Positions 2,411-62,412 of a DNA stretch of 64,000 nt are shown here, in pieces. The notes below the pieces were generated by a model. That model searched no databases, had not been told where the DNA came from, and saw only the letters and a list, made by a program, of their open reading frames with translations. How positions within the stretch are numbered: position 1 is the stretch's first letter; the number at the start of each line of letters is the position of its first letter. Made by a program: the position numbers and the translations under genes. The stretch lies in the sequence record MZ475892.1; one strand, given 5' to 3'.

Positions 2411-3196
2411 TCACTCCAATACAAGATAGGTGACAGTGAGTTTAGGTTTTGCAGGGGACGTGCCGATATTCTTCATCCGCCACGAAACAACGTTGGTGTT
2501 ATCTCGGTTAGCCAAGAAGCTATAACGACGCAGCTTTTTCAAGACAGGGTTACCGTCAGCATCCTCGTCGTAGAATACGCCATCATCTACCAAGAAATTA
2601 GCAGTAGAGCGGAATAAATACGGGTTTCTGTCAGAACGATCAGAGGATTCGAACGCAGACAACTCAATGTCGAAAGCATTTGTCTCCACGCGTATGAGCA
2701 TACACGATTTGTTCATCGTCAGGTCGAAGTCAAGTTGTTGGCCAGGCGTGAGATACGCACCAGCTTCGAACTCAACAGTTTTACGCACGCCCTGGTTTTC
2801 GTTGCCGCTCATATCAACCCACATCATCGTACCGTTAGCGCCAGAGGTGAGGGTCATACCCGCATACTCAGGTTCAGGCACTTGCTTATTGGGATCGATA
2901 CCAACAACAGTTAAACCAGTTTCATCTACAGCGGTTACGAACGGAGCATCAAAACGATAGTTCGATCCTCCGAATTTCGCTTCCTCCCATGTTACGTTGT
3001 CTGTACCAAGTTGATACATCTTCTTGGTCTCTGTGACGTAACACAACATCCCAGGCTTTTTATTACCTACAGACATTGCGTTACGATCAGCAAGAGTTGG
3101 CAGACAGCGCATACCCCCTCGAAGATATTTGTCCTCGAGGAGATATGGGAGAGCTGTAGATGCAGGCACCAAGAACGAAGTCATGTTGACCGGCAT
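2411..3196 (-). CDS. Putative tail fibre-associated structural protein
   Basis: N-terminal LLEDKYLRGG...LADRNAM...GMLCYV.ETKKMYQL resembles a module common in phage fibre/appendage proteins; GGAG RBS. Confidence 0.5.
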   Translation of the reverse strand: MPVNMTSFLVPASTALPYLLEDKYLRGGMRCLPTLADRNAMSVGNKKPGMLCYVTETKKMYQLGTDNVTWEEAKFGGSNYRFDAPFVTAVDETGLTVVGIDPNKQVPEPEYAGMTLTSGANGTMMWVDMSGNENQGVRKTVEFEAGAYLTPGQQLDFDLTMNKSCMLIRVETNAFDIELSAFESSDRSDRNPYLFRSTANFLVDDGVFYDEDADGNPVLKKLRRYSFLANRDNTNVVSWRMKNIGTSPAKPKLTVTYLVLE

Positions 3197-22322: not shown

Positions 22323-22332
22323 TATTTACAGA
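22323..22332 (-). promoter_or_regulatory. Putative replication-class promoter motif TCTGTAAATA
   Basis: 40 bp upstream of the polA ATG, directly after a terminator. Confidence 0.6.
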
Positions 22333-23631: not shown

Positions 23632-24186
23632 TTACTTGCGGTTTTTAGTCCAGTTAGAATTTTGAGGTTTCTTTTCGCTTTGTGGCGAAGTGTTCTCCTC
23701 GTTAATCTCTTCCTCCTCGTCCTCATCTTCGTCCTCAACGACAGGCTCAGCAGCAGGCGCGGCTTCGATCTTAGTCACTTCGAGAATTTGAGAGGGCAGT
23801 GGATTCTGATTTACAGATGAAGCGACAGCAGCAGGTTCGCTTACTGTAGGCTCTACATCAGCAGTCGCACCTACAACATGTTCGTGGACGATCTGCTTAG
23901 TCAGCAACGCACCTTTCTCAGCGAGAATCTGATCAGCACGTTCTTGGTCCCACTTAACCCACAGGATATCGAGACCCTTGTGTGCGTACATGAAACCCTG
24001 AGGCAGCTTACCACGGCCGTTGAACGGCAGACCGTTAGAAGGAACGCCTGGCTCGAACTCGTCCATCAGTTCCCACTTGCGTTTAGCCGTGATACACTTC
24101 GGTCCCCATACACCATCACACGCACCATCGTACAGATCGAGCATGGTCATGATGACTTGGAGCTTCTGATAGAATTTATTCAGCAT
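23632..24186 (-). CDS. Protein with an N-terminal peptidoglycan-binding (PG_binding_1-like) domain and an acidic tail
   Basis: KLQVIMTMLDLYDGACDGVWGPKCITA matches the LQ..L...g.y.g..DG.wGp.t..A pattern; EDEDEDEEEE tract. Confidence 0.6.
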   Translation of the reverse strand: MLNKFYQKLQVIMTMLDLYDGACDGVWGPKCITAKRKWELMDEFEPGVPSNGLPFNGRGKLPQGFMYAHKGLDILWVKWDQERADQILAEKGALLTKQIVHEHVVGATADVEPTVSEPAAVASSVNQNPLPSQILEVTKIEAAPAAEPVVEDEDEDEEEEINEENTSPQSEKKPQNSNWTKNRK

Positions 24187-33715: not shown

Positions 33716-33723
33716 GAAATTAG
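33716..33723 (-). promoter_or_regulatory. Putative late-class promoter motif CTAATTTC
   Basis: 31 bp upstream of ATG 33685, intergenic. Confidence 0.5.
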
Positions 33724-37332: not shown

Positions 37333-37340
37333 AAAATTAG
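37333..37340 (-). promoter_or_regulatory. Putative late-class promoter motif CTAATTTT
   Basis: 38 bp upstream of ATG 37295, intergenic. Confidence 0.55.
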
Positions 37341-38199: not shown

Positions 38200-38207
38200 A
38201 AAATTAG
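38200..38207 (-). promoter_or_regulatory. Putative late-class promoter motif CTAATTTT
   Basis: 66 bp upstream of the H1-like ATG, intergenic. Confidence 0.5.
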
Positions 38208-39355: not shown

Positions 39356-39365
39356 TATTTACAGA
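39356..39365 (-). promoter_or_regulatory. Putative replication-class promoter motif TCTGTAAATA
   Basis: 27 bp upstream of sbcD, directly after a hairpin. Confidence 0.55.
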
Positions 39366-44087: not shown

Positions 44088-44684
44088 TTAGACTCTGCCG
44101 GTCATAGTAAATTCTTTGCCCGCAGAGTAATCTCCTAAGGCCGCATAAAGAGAATCACGCAACATCTTCTGAATGATATCCGAGTTATACGCGGACGCGT
44201 CGCGGAAAGCGACTTCAACAGTTTCAGTGCGTGGGTTGATCACAGCATAACGCAAAGGTGCAATCTCCTGAGCGTCACACCACAGATCGACAACGTGCTG
44301 TAGTCCAGGCGTGATCTGAATTTTGAAATCAGACAGCAAGAACACAGCACTTTGAATCGGAGGCGGAGCAGACTGAGAGACAACAGCATTGTCTCCAAGT
44401 TTCTCCATAGCCATAGATGCATTGTACACTGAGGAGAATTTCGTTCTCAGTGCAGAAGTCTGTACTACCTTATAGCTATTCGATGAAATGCCTTGACGAC
44501 GCAGCTTGGCGATACGCACAACGTAATCACCAGAATCGTCTGAGGCAAATGCAACGTAAGCGTAGCTCACGAAGCCAGGCTCCTCACTAAGCAGCTTGTG
44601 GTCGAGGGCACGAACACCCAAGACAGCACTAAGTGCCTGTAGGCCCATCTGAACTTCGCGGGACAGAGACACGTACATTTCCAT
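44088..44684 (-). CDS. Hypothetical protein with the shared leader MEMYVSLS
   Basis: 198 aa; between endolysin and the basic paralogues. Confidence 0.6.
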   Translation of the reverse strand: MEMYVSLSREVQMGLQALSAVLGVRALDHKLLSEEPGFVSYAYVAFASDDSGDYVVRIAKLRRQGISSNSYKVVQTSALRTKFSSVYNASMAMEKLGDNAVVSQSAPPPIQSAVFLLSDFKIQITPGLQHVVDLWCDAQEIAPLRYAVINPRTETVEVAFRDASAYNSDIIQKMLRDSLYAALGDYSAGKEFTMTGRV

Positions 44685-49481: not shown

Positions 49482-49506
49482 AAGGGCCACCATCTAGGCA
49501 GCCCTT
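49482..49506 (-). terminator. Intrinsic terminator
   Basis: AAGGGCTGCC...GGTGGCCCTT followed by CTTTTT. Confidence 0.7.
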
Positions 49507-49513
49507 GCATGTC

Positions 49514-49960
49514 TTAATATCTACGAGGCTTCTTAGGCTTCTTGATCGTAGACTTAGGACGCTTGATAGCCCGCAGTGCTTTGCGTGCTTCCACAATTTG
49601 TTTGGCTACAGTGGAACGACGAGCTTTGACCTGGTCCGTATCTTGGTCAGTGCCTTTCAGCTTATCGAGTCTGTTCCACTCTTGCACCAGACGATCAACA
49701 ACACCAGCGCGACCGACGCGTTGCTGGTTGATGCGCACAATGTCCTGATGAGTCTTCACGGAGTTTTGTGCGTCTTTCTGTTTAGCACGCGCAGATGCAA
49801 CGTGATCAGAGTTACCCTCAGCAGACTTCTCGTTAAGCTGCTTACGTCTAAGTGCCAGACGGCGTTGCGCTTGCTTGAGTTCGTCTTTGGAGTTCTCCAG
49901 TTGCGTCTGCATGTCTTCAAGAGGACTTGAGCGTGCGCTCAGACTAACGAGAAGTTCCAT
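49514..49960 (-). CDS. Basic coiled-coil protein with the shared leader MELLVSLSA
   Basis: Start moved to ATG 49960 (GAGGA RBS); K/R-rich C-terminus. Confidence 0.65.
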   Translation of the reverse strand: MELLVSLSARSSPLEDMQTQLENSKDELKQAQRRLALRRKQLNEKSAEGNSDHVASARAKQKDAQNSVKTHQDIVRINQQRVGRAGVVDRLVQEWNRLDKLKGTDQDTDQVKARRSTVAKQIVEARKALRAIKRPKSTIKKPKKPRRY

Positions 49961-49967
49961 AGGTTCC

Positions 49968-50519
49968 TCACACAGGCTGTATGGTAATGATCTGGACGCC
50001 TTGTTCATTACGCGACTTGAGAATGCGGAAGCGGAAGTCTATTGGATAAATCCATTCGAGTTCATCCATAAGACCATCAAGAATCATCTCACGTTCTTCT
50101 TCGTCACCACCGAACTCTTTATCAAGATCAGCAGCCATGATAAGATTGTACGTGCGCTGCCAATAGTTGAAGGCTTTGTTCTTTGGCCCAGGAAGAATCT
50201 CCAGCATCGTATCTGTCTTGCCTGCCTTTGCAAAACCTTTAGCAGTAGCGAAGTCTTGACTGAACGACAGGTACTTGTTGATCATCACGAAAGGATTCTT
50301 AGCCTGCTTAAACAGAGCCATGAGTTCTTTTTCATACAGACCACGATACAGAGGCATCTCAGGACGTTCGGGATATTTAGCGATCAGATCATCAAGCGCA
50401 GGGCTGGAGCGATTAGCGTCAATCACATGCCCTTTATCGTGGAGCATAGTCCACATAATGTCTTGCTGTCTGTCGGTGTAGGCAGGTATCTTAGCACTGA
50501 GGCTAACCATGAGTTCCAT
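49968..50519 (-). CDS. Putative ADP-ribosyltransferase (R-S-E clade, VIP2/T4 Alt-Mod-like)
   Basis: LYRG, YLSFS and ELEWIYP (ExE) followed by FRILK; leader MELMVSLSA. Confidence 0.7.
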   Translation of the reverse strand: MELMVSLSAKIPAYTDRQQDIMWTMLHDKGHVIDANRSSPALDDLIAKYPERPEMPLYRGLYEKELMALFKQAKNPFVMINKYLSFSQDFATAKGFAKAGKTDTMLEILPGPKNKAFNYWQRTYNLIMAADLDKEFGGDEEEREMILDGLMDELEWIYPIDFRFRILKSRNEQGVQIITIQPV

Positions 50520-50530
50520 ACAGGTTCCTT

Positions 50531-50558
50531 AAAAGAAAAGGCGGACCGAAGCCCGCCT
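50531..50558 (-). terminator. Intrinsic terminator directly upstream of the ART RBS
   Basis: AGGCGGGC-TTCG-GTCCGCCT-TTTCTTTT. Confidence 0.7.
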
Positions 50559-50647
50559 CTGAGTAATGTGCGCTATGCACTCGACGGTTAAGTCTCCTGC
50601 TATTGTTTTACCTCGTTGCAGTAAACGAGGAGATAAGGATCACCTCC

Positions 50648-51196
50648 TCAGACGGTACCTAATACTTCAAGCACATCTTCGTCGTCCACACTTGCAGACC
50701 ACGAACGCATAACAGAAGCATTGCCGCGATTGCCTGTCAGCATTGATTTAACTGCTGGTGTGGCTTCGATTTCGGCATAGTGTTCCAAGAGAGCTTTGTC
50801 ATCTTTGAACCACATAATGGAGTTACCGTCCTTAGGGACGATCAAGAATTGGGTAGGCTTCTGGGTGACGTTCAACGTCAGGTAGTAATCACCAGCACCT
50901 TTAGGAGTCAGCATCGGCATTGGCTTCATCGCATACATGAAGTCCTTAGCGTGCATTAGTTTCTGATCGCCGAGCAACCAGATTGCGCCTTCTTCACCTT
51001 GACGCACAGCAGACAAATCGCCTTTACGTGTTGCAATCGTTCCGAATACATCTTTATCGAAACGTGACAGACCGAAGATCAGCGATGCGAGACGCTTCAG
51101 GTCCGGGGTCGTGCATGGACTGTTGATTACAGCCATACCCTCAGACCCAAGTGTGAATTTAGAGAGTGAAATAAAGAGTTCCATCGTAACGTCCAT
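50648..51196 (-). CDS. Hypothetical protein with the shared leader MELFISLS (alternative start 51184)
   Basis: 182 aa; late motif upstream. Confidence 0.6.
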   Translation of the reverse strand: MDVTMELFISLSKFTLGSEGMAVINSPCTTPDLKRLASLIFGLSRFDKDVFGTIATRKGDLSAVRQGEEGAIWLLGDQKLMHAKDFMYAMKPMPMLTPKGAGDYYLTLNVTQKPTQFLIVPKDGNSIMWFKDDKALLEHYAEIEATPAVKSMLTGNRGNASVMRSWSASVDDEDVLEVLGTV

Positions 51197-51217: not shown

Positions 51218-51225
51218 AAAATTAG
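51218..51225 (-). promoter_or_regulatory. Putative late-class promoter motif CTAATTTT
   Basis: After a terminator, upstream of the MELxxSLS gene cluster. Confidence 0.55.
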
Positions 51226-51251: not shown

Positions 51252-51279
51252 AAAAGGGCGACCCTTAGGCCACCCTTTT
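51252..51279 (-). terminator. Intrinsic terminator after dnaX
   Basis: AAAAGGGTGGCC-TAAG-GGTCGCCCTTTT. Confidence 0.8.
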
Positions 51280-51294
51280 GTTAGTTATTTACCA

Positions 51295-52572
51295 CTACTT
51301 CTTCTTTTTCTTTTTCTTGGGCTTTTCGTCTTCGTCGTCATCTTCGACTTCGTTACCCAATTTCACAGACAGCTTGCCTTCATAAATGTCGGCCATCAGA
51401 CTGAGGATAGTTGCTTCCAACATAATGTCAGCAGGCACGGAGGTACTGTTGAATGCTACCTCTGCTTCTGCCAGTGCTTTCTGCAAATAAATCAGGCAAA
51501 CAAGATTGACCTTAATCTTCTCTTGCTTAACCATATTCAGGAACATCTTGAGGCCAGCAGACTGCCACTTGTTTGTGTCAGAGTAATGACCAAGCGCACC
51601 GTGAAGTACCCAGCGTGCTTTCGCTACGATTGCTCGTGGGTTGTTTGCTTCACGCAGGAACTGAATGACGCCGATAAGGTCCATCGCAATGAACGCACCG
51701 ATAGTCTGAACTGCTTTGCCTTCCATTTCAATTTCTGGATCGGCCGCTGCAAGTTCTGCCACCAGCTTCTTATCAAACGCTTCACCACCTTTGACTGACG
51801 CAAAGATGTTTTGCATCATCGTGATTGCACCGCGCATCTGACCGCCTGCATACTCGGCAACCTGATGCAACGCTGATTCAGCTTTATCACGCGCTTTATC
51901 TTTCTTAGGCATGATGCCAAGAATATCAGCGATTTCTGACAGACGCTTCGCAATGATGTCGGTAGGAATCGGCCTGATAGGAAGTTGTGTCATACGACTG
52001 ATCATCGTATCTTTCATCTTCTCAGGGTTCGTGGTCACGAAGATGAACACGACATGCGCTGGTGGTTCTTCAATGATCTTGAGGAACTTCGATTCGGCTG
52101 CGCTCGACATGAGGTGAGCTTCATCGAGAATGAACACACGGCGTTTGAACGTAGGCGCCAGAGGTGCTGAGTCAACGATACGCTGTGAGCCTTCAACTTT
52201 ACCAGAGTCGCTACCCATATCGAACTCTTGCACGTCAGGGTGCTGGCCGTTATTGTACACCATGCGACACGAGGCACACTTACCACACGCGCTAAACGAA
52301 TCACAGTTGATGTACTTTGCGACGAGACGCGCAAACGTTGTTTTACCACTACCCAGATGGCCTGTAATGATCATCGTTGATGGAACTGTTTTCGACTTCT
52401 GCCAACCGTTCATGATCTTAACGATGTGGTCTTGACCTACATAGTCTTCGATGCGTTTCGGTCGAAACTGAGCGGCAAAGTTTACCGTAGTCAGTTCAGT
52501 AGAAGACTCGGACTTGGAACTACTTGAACCAAAGTCACGTTTCTTCTTCTTTTTCTTTTCTTCTTTCGCCAT
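51295..52572 (-). CDS. dnaX: Clamp loader ATPase, DNA Pol III gamma/tau-like
   Basis: FAAQFRP...DYVGQ, GHLGSGKTT, Cys4 zinc motif, ILDEAH, LKIIEEPP, TISR-like sensor MISR, GQMRGA. Confidence 0.9.
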   Translation of the reverse strand: MAKEEKKKKKKRDFGSSSSKSESSTELTTVNFAAQFRPKRIEDYVGQDHIVKIMNGWQKSKTVPSTMIITGHLGSGKTTFARLVAKYINCDSFSACGKCASCRMVYNNGQHPDVQEFDMGSDSGKVEGSQRIVDSAPLAPTFKRRVFILDEAHLMSSAAESKFLKIIEEPPAHVVFIFVTTNPEKMKDTMISRMTQLPIRPIPTDIIAKRLSEIADILGIMPKKDKARDKAESALHQVAEYAGGQMRGAITMMQNIFASVKGGEAFDKKLVAELAAADPEIEMEGKAVQTIGAFIAMDLIGVIQFLREANNPRAIVAKARWVLHGALGHYSDTNKWQSAGLKMFLNMVKQEKIKVNLVCLIYLQKALAEAEVAFNSTSVPADIMLEATILSLMADIYEGKLSVKLGNEVEDDDEDEKPKKKKKKK

Positions 52573-52608: not shown

Positions 52609-52618
52609 TATTTACAGA
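52609..52618 (-). promoter_or_regulatory. Putative replication-class promoter motif TCTGTAAATA
   Basis: 37 bp upstream of dnaX, after a terminator. Confidence 0.6.
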
Positions 52619-52962: not shown

Positions 52963-52972
52963 TGTTTACAGA
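52963..52972 (-). promoter_or_regulatory. Putative replication-class promoter motif TCTGTAAACA
   Basis: 40 bp upstream of ATG 52923. Confidence 0.5.
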
Positions 52973-53373: not shown

Positions 53374-53381
53374 AAAATTAG
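53374..53381 (-). promoter_or_regulatory. Putative late-class promoter motif CTAATTTT with no downstream CDS
   Basis: Exact motif match, pointing into the non-coding region. Confidence 0.45.
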
Positions 53382-57102: not shown

Positions 57103-57112
57103 TGTTTACAGA
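57103..57112 (-). promoter_or_regulatory. Putative replication-class promoter motif TCTGTAAACA
   Basis: Intergenic, 23 bp upstream of ATG 57080. Confidence 0.45.
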
Positions 57113-59275: not shown

Positions 59276-59285
59276 TATTTACAGA
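59276..59285 (-). promoter_or_regulatory. Putative replication-class promoter motif TCTGTAAATA
   Basis: 30 bp upstream of ATG 59246. Confidence 0.55.
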
Positions 59286-62403: not shown

Positions 62404-62412
62404 TCTGTAAAT
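62404..62412 (+). promoter_or_regulatory. Putative replication-class promoter motif TCTGTAAAT
   Basis: The motif flips to the plus strand together with the genes; 34 bp upstream of ATG 62446. Confidence 0.5.

Follow-up and report, generated by a model that had tools for sequence, protein, structure and literature searches.

What would a small phage enzyme do with an N-terminal peptide that recurs at the start of unrelated proteins of the same phage? The question is raised by a gene in a 64,000-nucleotide (nt) stretch of sequence record MZ475892.1, called the window below, in which positions equal those of the record minus 124000. The gene (49968-50519) encodes a predicted ADP-ribosyltransferase (ART) that opens with the leader MELMVSLSA. 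A preliminary description, made from the letters of the window, had read it as an R-S-E ART comparable to T4 Alt, ModA and ModB, carrying a leader of the form MELxxSLS and delivered with the virion. The open reading frame (ORF) is as given there: it lies on the minus strand, starts with ATG and codes for 183 amino acids (aa). Between 49400 and 51300 the window is 100% identical to Erwinia phage pEa_SNUABM_34 (MZ475892.1); its identity to eight sister phages, which like it belong to the genus Snuvirus, is 98.8-99.3%. These phages are 264-kb jumbo myoviruses of Erwinia amylovora. The major head protein groups Snuvirus with Alexandravirus, Y3, Yoloswag and the Dickeya AD1/JA phages, and places the Pseudomonas phages Lu11 and PaBG at a greater distance. 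The name 'Lupandier' group has been used for these phages as a set (PMC7412058).

Judging from sequence comparison and a structural model, the gene product is very probably a mono-ADP-ribosyltransferase of the ModA/ModB family (R-S-ExE clade), intact and made up of a single domain. The protein matches PHROG_832 ('RNA polymerase ADP-ribosylase') with an E value of 2.6e-13, and orthologs of 66-99% identity carry a precomputed Pfam label, PF26816 (Mod_ADP_RT). Scans of the protein itself against Pfam and NCBIfam gave nothing significant (DRAT at 0.09) with a Pfam set that did not contain the Mod_ADP_RT model, and a single-sequence search of the PDB returned spurious pentatricopeptide-repeat matches only. 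When 1.84 billion representatives were searched exhaustively, 82 relatives came to light, most of them 150-215 aa long. The profile of this family matches solved R-S-E ARTs (Vis at 1.5e-4, ExoT at 1e-3, also ExoS and Lmo0066), with the YRG, SxS and ExE motifs in register. Using tblastn, the protein finds modB or 'ADP-ribosylase' genes of T4-like Enterobacter, Klebsiella and Kosakonia phages (modB at 2e-6); with modB as annotated in phage CIP9 it shares 29% identity over 173 aa, in an alignment that begins at query residue 14 (pairwise E value 2e-21).

The motif peptides named in the preliminary description are all present: LYRG at residues 57-60, YLSFS at 83-87, ELEWIYP at 153-159 and FRILK at 164-168. 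Conservation was counted in an alignment of 75 of the 82 relatives. Its best conserved columns are the catalytic ones, and the R-S-ExE residues are therefore not a chance motif. Arg59 is Arg in 74 of the 75 sequences and Gly60 is invariant; Ser85 is kept in 72, position 87 is Ser in 67 and Thr in the other 8; both glutamates of the ExE pair, E153 and E155, are found in 75/75 and the following W156 in 72/75. The YRG motif aligns with YRG of Vis and FRG of modB, and the ExE pair with that of Vis and modB. The AlphaFold2 model has a predicted local distance difference test score (pLDDT) of 92.7 and a predicted template modelling (TM) score of 0.87, with only residues 1-5 below a pLDDT of 50. It has the ART fold, the absence of which had been named beforehand as part of the grounds for rejecting the assignment. 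Foldseek retrieves HopU1, XopAI, ExoS, Tre1, C3, Certhrax, Vis and VIP2 with probability 1.00 and TM 0.47-0.61.

The fold, the catalytic Arg strand, Ser-x-Ser/Thr and Glu-x-Glu are the features of the R-S-E clade, in which the 'Mod family' has been placed (PMC9503650). Within it, the significant family match and the small single-domain size point to the Mod family. T4 ModA and ModB (about 200 aa) resemble the protein in having one ART domain and the same R/S-x-S/E-x-E arrangement, and predicted ModA/ModB proteins (TM 0.70-0.78), not Alt, are its best viral structural matches. The ART assignment thus stands on family, invariant catalytic columns and predicted fold, and it has to be narrowed to ModA/ModB, leaving out Alt. 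Both are R-S-E clade ARTs of myoviruses, but Alt, which is carried in the head, belongs to the Alt/VIP2 family, has several domains and is far larger, and the present ART is a single domain known from its gene; no specific Alt match was found beyond the shared PHROG_832 profile. The sister copy gp209 in the RefSeq record of pEa_SNUABM_7 already bears the product name 'RNA polymerase ADP-ribosylase', which is a transfer from the family.

Going by its family, the enzyme would bind NAD+ (nicotinamide adenine dinucleotide) or, like T4 ModB, possibly NAD-capped RNA, and would transfer ADP-ribosyl to arginines of host proteins, probably of the transcription or translation machinery. An ExE pair is the signature of arginine-directed R-S-E enzymes, and in T4 the target of ModA is RNA polymerase alpha while ModB acts on the ribosomal proteins S1 and L2. 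T4 ModB modifies arginines, and the Arg of its R-S-EXE is essential (PMC10468400). It might be argued that the fold serves another reaction, as in an NADase, a modifier of nucleic acids or small molecules, or an RNAylating enzyme such as T4 ModB. Indeed the structural relatives include enzymes with other acceptors, Vis has been solved with agmatine, ModB uses NAD-capped RNA (PMC10468400), and the phage has several NAD-linked genes (Nudix, NAD-dependent ligase, KptA/Tpt1). Given the invariant ExE pair, however, and ModA/ModB as the nearest named relatives, we consider such an activity distinctly unlikely. The labels 'anti-defence' and 'toxin' given to the protein earlier are guesses.

That the reading frame is a chance or decaying one has practically no probability: nothing was found in its favour and we consider it refuted. 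The ORF is intact and has a ribosome-binding site, it is 99-100% conserved across nine phages, and more distant orthologs at 43-84% identity keep all catalytic columns, next to the high-confidence fold. Two antisense ORFs over the gene gave no match in the family search. The G+C content of the gene is similar to that of its surroundings.

The first 8-9 residues lie outside the enzyme domain, and more distant Mod relatives are leaderless and align only from residue 13-20. Their pattern (Met, any, aliphatic, any, aliphatic, Ser, aliphatic, Ser) recurs in three neighbouring minus-strand genes, which start with MELFISLSKF (51184), MELMVSLSAK (50519) and MELLVSLSAR (49960). Genome-wide counts were made on the complete genome of pEa_SNUABM_7. 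Across its six frames the pattern occurs 11 times; 8 of these are gene starts, and 7 coincide with a RefSeq start codon. At the N-terminus this amounts to 7-8 cases against 0.03 expected (344 proteins; five constrained positions with a probability of 9.4e-5), whereas inside proteins the core pattern shows no enrichment (6 seen, 7.8 expected). The eight genes are gp210, gp209 (the ART), gp208, gp200, gp243, gp253, gp127 (Nudix) and gp156 (ligase). Their proteins are otherwise unrelated, with different PHROGs or none and isoelectric points (pI) of 4.5 to 10.7. The ART hence shares its leader with at least six other unrelated phage proteins, including a Nudix hydrolase, and the MELxxSLS element that the preliminary description had noticed in the three-gene cluster is a real N-terminal element at the peptide level.

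The serine codons differ between the copies of the leader (AGC, AGT, TCA, TCT and TCC). Because they switch between AGY and TCN, selection acts on the leader as a peptide and not on its DNA or RNA. It is very improbable that the shared start reflects a property of the nucleic acid or of translation, enhancing or coupling initiation and giving the peptide as a by-product, even though every copy sits exactly at a start codon and a conserved RNA element beside the cluster contains an extended Shine-Dalgarno-like 11-mer. Synonymous codons differ, and at both serines the switch takes two base changes while the residue is kept; orthologs in other genera conserve residues rather than bases; and the regions upstream of the leader copies are unrelated. 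The codon evidence thus largely refutes an explanation at the DNA level.

Among 25 leader N-termini from six phages, M1, an aliphatic residue at position 3, V/I at position 5, S6 and S8 are found in all 25 and L7 in 23. The leader is kept in pEa_SNUABM_32 and pEa_SNUABM_1 (Alexandravirus), Y3 (Sasquatchvirus), Yoloswag (Yoloswagvirus), Yersinia phage fHe-Yen9-02 and metagenome contigs. It is conserved across at least four genera, and the tag is therefore old. Of the ART orthologs, down to 43% identity, 10/10 keep Ser-Leu-Ser.

Conservation of the leader does not extend to the presence of the ART gene. The gp210 ortholog is found in 57 phage records and the ART in 11 of this group (nine Snuvirus, two of SNUABM_32). 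In the slot that separates the hairpin from the gp208 ortholog (Table 1), pEa_SNUABM_1 and most Alexandraviruses have nothing, Y3 has an unrelated leader protein of 256 aa, and two metagenome contigs have a homolog of that Y3 protein together with the ART; in others the ART stands alone. The ART is thus an accessory gene, and the slot it occupies is variable. Because the content of the slot varies, neither neighbour can be regarded as its dedicated partner; gp210 and gp208 were considered as partners or immunity proteins of the ART and rejected, as both persist without it in pEa_SNUABM_1 and most Alexandraviruses.

On the minus strand the order is clamp loader, hairpin, CTAATTT, gp210 ortholog, a conserved non-coding stretch of about 90 nt, hairpin, ART, gp208 ortholog and hairpin. 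The cluster is set between replication and repair genes, outside the head module; a 773-aa SbcC/Rad50-like gene is among its neighbours. Of the 21 copies of the promoter-like motif CTAATTT, 14 fall in non-coding DNA, where 1.2 would be expected, at a distance of 30-50 nt from the start codon that follows. The motif is found upstream of the tail sheath gene (PHROG_23, 8e-60), a small gene before the portal gene, gp253, the leader-Nudix operon and the gp210 cluster, and its TAATTT core is retained upstream of gp210 orthologs in five phages. A second promoter-like motif, TCTGTAAA, is strongly enriched in non-coding DNA and precedes the clamp-loader and sigma-factor genes and genes of the polymerase region; it resembles a motif labelled 'putative middle/late promoter' in the Lu11 record. 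The preliminary description had placed the cluster under a late-class motif. This holds in so far as CTAATTT heads the cluster and also precedes the tail sheath gene, but the motif lies upstream of the first gene and not of the ART. A late class for the cluster is plausible from these positions, and the motif shared with the tail sheath gene, taken by itself, hints against early expression of the ART unit.

Table 1. Coordinates of the ART gene, its leader cluster and further features. Positions are those of the window unless the pEa_SNUABM_7 record is named.
Feature	Position	Strand	Remarks
Clamp-loader gene	51295-52572	-	Neighbour upstream of the cluster
Terminator-like hairpin	51252..51279	-	Closes the clamp-loader unit
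Promoter-like motif CTAATTT ('class A')	51219..51225	-	35 nt before the first leader gene start
First leader gene, 178 aa	50648..51184	-	PHROG_31786; ortholog of gp210
Conserved structured intergenic RNA-like element	50561..50650	-	After the stop of the gp210 ortholog
21-mer of the GGAGGTGATCC/ATCTCCTC hairpin in the RNA-like element	50627-50647		GGAGGTGATCC pairs with ATCTCCTC
GC-rich terminator-like hairpin with T-run	50537..50560	-	Directly upstream of the ART ribosome-binding site; conserved in relatives
Shine-Dalgarno-like AAGGAA of the ART gene	50525..50530	-	5 nt before the ATG
ART gene, 183 aa	49968..50519	-	ATG start; ortholog of pEa_SNUABM_7 gp209
Leader, residues 1-9 (MELMVSLSA)	50493..50519	-	pLDDT <50 at residues 1-5; missing from leaderless Mod-family relatives, which align from residue 13-14 onwards
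Mod-type ART domain, residues 14-183	49971..50480	-	Predicted from sequence and AlphaFold2 model
Arg59 of the YRG motif (Y58-R59-G60)	50343..50345	-	
Ser85-Phe86-Ser87 (S-x-S motif)	50259..50267	-	
Glu153-Leu154-Glu155 (ExE, ARTT loop)	50055..50063	-	
Third leader gene, 148 aa, pI 10.7	49514..49960	-	PHROG_28362; ortholog of gp208; very basic C-terminus; starts 7 nt past the ART stop
Terminator-like hairpin	49482..49506	-	Closes the cluster
SbcC/Rad50-like gene, 773 aa	46687-49008	-	Annotated as exonuclease SbcC in Y3
Fourth leader gene, 198 aa from the leader start (MEMYVSLSRE)	44088..44684	-	Ortholog of gp200; adjoins the endolysin gene
CTAATTT copies in the window	51219-51225, 53375-53381, 38201-38207, 37334-37340, 33717-33723, 2595-2601	-	
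TCTGTAAA copies	52611-52618, 52965-52972, 57105-57112, 59278-59285, 39358-39365, 22325-22332, 23810-23817	-	
TCTGTAAA copy	62404-62411	+	
Leader-Nudix gene gp127	pEa_SNUABM_7 record 91282-91737	-	Outside the window; N-terminus MMLNVSLSAK
NAD-dependent DNA ligase gene gp156	pEa_SNUABM_7 record 116241-118211	-	Outside the window
KptA/Tpt1 RNA 2'-phosphotransferase gene	pEa_SNUABM_7 record 220509-221054	+	Outside the window; Pfam 3.9e-45

The non-coding stretch between the first leader gene and the ART hairpin resembles a structured RNA. Its mean column identity is 77% in five phages of three genera and a metagenome contig, far above that of the flanking genes. It opens with an invariant GGAGGTGATCC, the extended Shine-Dalgarno-like 11-mer, which we take to be complementary to the 3' tail of 16S ribosomal RNA and which forms a hairpin stem with ATCTCCTC. 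In Yoloswag and fHe-Yen9-02, compensatory changes are seen in a second hairpin, and GCATAGCGC is invariant as well. Each genome has a single copy of the element, and no start codon lies at working distance from GGAGGTGATCC. Rfam gave no match for the element or the window. It constitutes a separate, unexplained feature beside the cluster.

What, then, may the leader do? Reasoning by analogy, we favour a virion-borne ART, delivered with the DNA and equipped with the leader as a head-loading tag, and we hold this tentatively, at somewhat less than even confidence. As a sorting tag, the leader would direct the tagged proteins to a single partner, which most likely resides in the head during its assembly, and loading would proceed as for the T4 internal proteins, by a capsid-targeting sequence (CTS). 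Carried in the virion, the ART would, like T4 Alt, be active as soon as the next infection begins. The three-gene unit would then consist of a promoter-like motif, the first leader gene, the structured RNA with a leaky-looking terminator, a variable cargo gene, the basic leader protein and a terminator, with the ART gene occupying the variable 'cargo slot'.

Several observations favour head loading. The CTS is the only feature common to the T4 internal proteins (PMC3012670), and the leader proteins show the same pattern in that a short N-terminal peptide is all that these unrelated proteins share. ARTs and Nudix proteins are often fused to MuF proteins, portal proteins or the protease, or are encoded among head genes, and are predicted to be injected (PMC9503650). 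Head loading is thus also favoured because the ART and the Nudix protein that carry the leader represent domains fused to, or encoded with, head proteins in other myoviruses; portal- or MuF-fused ART models are among the structural matches of the ART. Further support comes from the promoter-like motif that three tagged units have in common with the tail sheath gene, and from the proteolytic processing of head proteins in this group (PaBG) along with the T4-type annotation of the Y3 protease.

A number of points nonetheless weigh against delivery with the virion. The term 'late' for CTAATTT derives from one clear structural gene, and the authors of the Lu11 record apply 'middle/late' to a different motif (CTGTAAATA type). 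The ART lacks a promoter-like motif of its own and follows the terminator-like hairpin 50537-50560; from this arrangement its expression would depend on read-through of the hairpin or on an unrecognised promoter. Two other leader genes, gp243 and gp253, are located in a plus-strand block of small genes. The T4 head protease cleaves after Glu, but the end of the leader has no conserved Glu (positions 9-10 are Ala, Lys, Arg and others), and T4-like removal is therefore not evident. T4 ModA and ModB are early enzymes that are not packaged (PMC10468400). A literature search found no virion proteome or expression data for Snuvirus or close relatives, and the 14-band proteome of PaBG, an insensitive one, contains no relevant protein. 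In the Y3 record the leader proteins are called 'hypothetical' and a few other proteins virion or structural, labels which do not mark mass-spectrometry hits.

The main rival is a docking or turnover tag that works inside the cell, so that an active Mod-type ART acts late in the cell in which it is made. We regard this as a serious possibility, albeit a rather doubtful one. The tag might add a strand to a common partner of phage or host: a chaperone, a factory for replication or assembly, or a protease by which the removal of the tagged proteins is timed. In the leader, aliphatic residues do alternate with others, as in an edge beta-strand, and the monomer model shows it as disordered; the cargo is heterogeneous, with the wide pI range given above and with enzymes next to coiled-coil-like proteins. 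T4 ModA and ModB themselves work inside the producing cell (PMC10468400). The missing T4-type cleavage context would also fit, as would a large conserved 'peptidase' gene (ortholog of gp216) 4 kb away. No candidate partner was identified, however, and such a tag would account less readily for the leader on both the ART and the Nudix protein, two domains fused to head proteins in other phages, or for the motif that the tagged units have in common with the tail sheath gene.

Returning to head loading, a wider version can be formulated in which the leader serves the PaBG/Lu11/Y3/Alexandra jumbo phages as a portable peptide for loading cargo, bringing a varying set of host-directed enzymes (Mod-type ART, Nudix and others) into the virion without structural fusion. 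Cargo would be swapped at the slot past the structured RNA, in which the 11-mer is locked in a hairpin, and the leaky terminator, these two together setting the cargo dose. In this full form we consider the proposal unlikely.

How the ART differs from known systems depends on the part considered. From T4 ModA/ModB it is set apart by a leader of 8-9 residues common to unrelated proteins, by a unit headed by a motif that also precedes the tail sheath gene (the T4 modA and modB genes are early) and by a phage genome that belongs to the PaBG/Lu11-group jumbo phages rather than being T4-like. With Alt it would share delivery together with the genome if the leader is a packaging tag. The likeness to the T4 internal proteins and their CTS is broader: a short N-terminal peptide as sole common feature of diverse, fast-changing small proteins, some of them clustered, in a myovirus whose group has a head protease annotated as T4-type; the T4 set consists of host-directed cargo. 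Differences are the absence of a conserved Glu cleavage context and the presence of recognisable enzymes (ART, Nudix) among the cargo, and the two peptides are likened by description, not by sequence. Fusions to MuF, portal or other head proteins and polyvalent virion proteins (PMC9503650) involve the same enzyme domains and the same presumed delivery purpose; the ART here is unfused, and a short detachable tag would serve instead. Encapsulins load unrelated enzymes into a shell of HK97 fold by means of short terminal peptides. The resemblance lies in the short terminal peptide, but encapsulins are cellular and not viral, and we use them as an analogy only, with no claim of homology.

The enzyme alone is ordinary: it adds one more to the ModA/ModB-like ARTs, and RefSeq has already named it. 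Closer attention is deserved by the shared leader and by the conserved RNA nearby. The enzyme is of a known kind, with what may be a new sorting tag. If the leader is indeed a loading tag, it would mark all proteins that these jumbo phages of plant pathogens, a widespread group, introduce into the cell, and candidate early host-takeover and counter-defence factors could be listed from sequence. A Mod-type ART, early and intracellular in T4, would then have been made virion cargo by an add-on of nine residues.

Other leader proteins show some variation in annotation and conservation. Several starts are wrongly placed in public annotations with respect to the leader. The RefSeq entry for gp200 is annotated from 20 codons upstream of the leader Met. 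In Yoloswag the annotated start of the Nudix gene is a GTG inside the leader, and that of the gp210 ortholog is the Met within '...VSMSG'. PDB sequence searches with gp210, gp208 and gp200 gave no match. The Nudix protein gp127 matches Pfam NUDIX at 2e-14 and its leader is retained in SNUABM_32, Y3 and Yoloswag; the gene sits among baseplate genes and also matches a portal-fused Nudix PHROG. The N-terminal extension of the Snuvirus ligase gp156 fits the leader loosely, but the ligases of SNUABM_32 and Y3 start differently and the leader is not conserved, which makes gp156 a doubtful member.

A few further observations concern the wider surroundings. The window contained no transfer RNA genes, and a Macro domain, as annotated in Y3_013, could not be confirmed in the Snuvirus ortholog. 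The KptA/Tpt1 gene of pEa_SNUABM_7 encodes another NAD-using enzyme of the ART superfamily. In another phage contig, of 222 kb, a leaderless ART relative of 33% identity adjoins a gene with a weak Pfam match to the Acb2/Tad1-hairpin family, whose members are counter-defence sponges. IMG/VR copies of Alexandraviruses and of Dickeya phage AD1 have a further gene past the gp208 ortholog, about 575 nt after the conserved RNA-like element, with a leader-like start in which Asp replaces Ser6 (e.g. MELTVDLSKP); this string may be a diverged or decayed tag. Finally, the 19-mer GGAGGTGATCCNNATCTCC occurs in 61 IMG/VR contigs, 16 from this phage group and 45 from others. Because 45/61 fall outside the group, the Shine-Dalgarno/anti-Shine-Dalgarno hairpin recurs in unrelated viral contigs.

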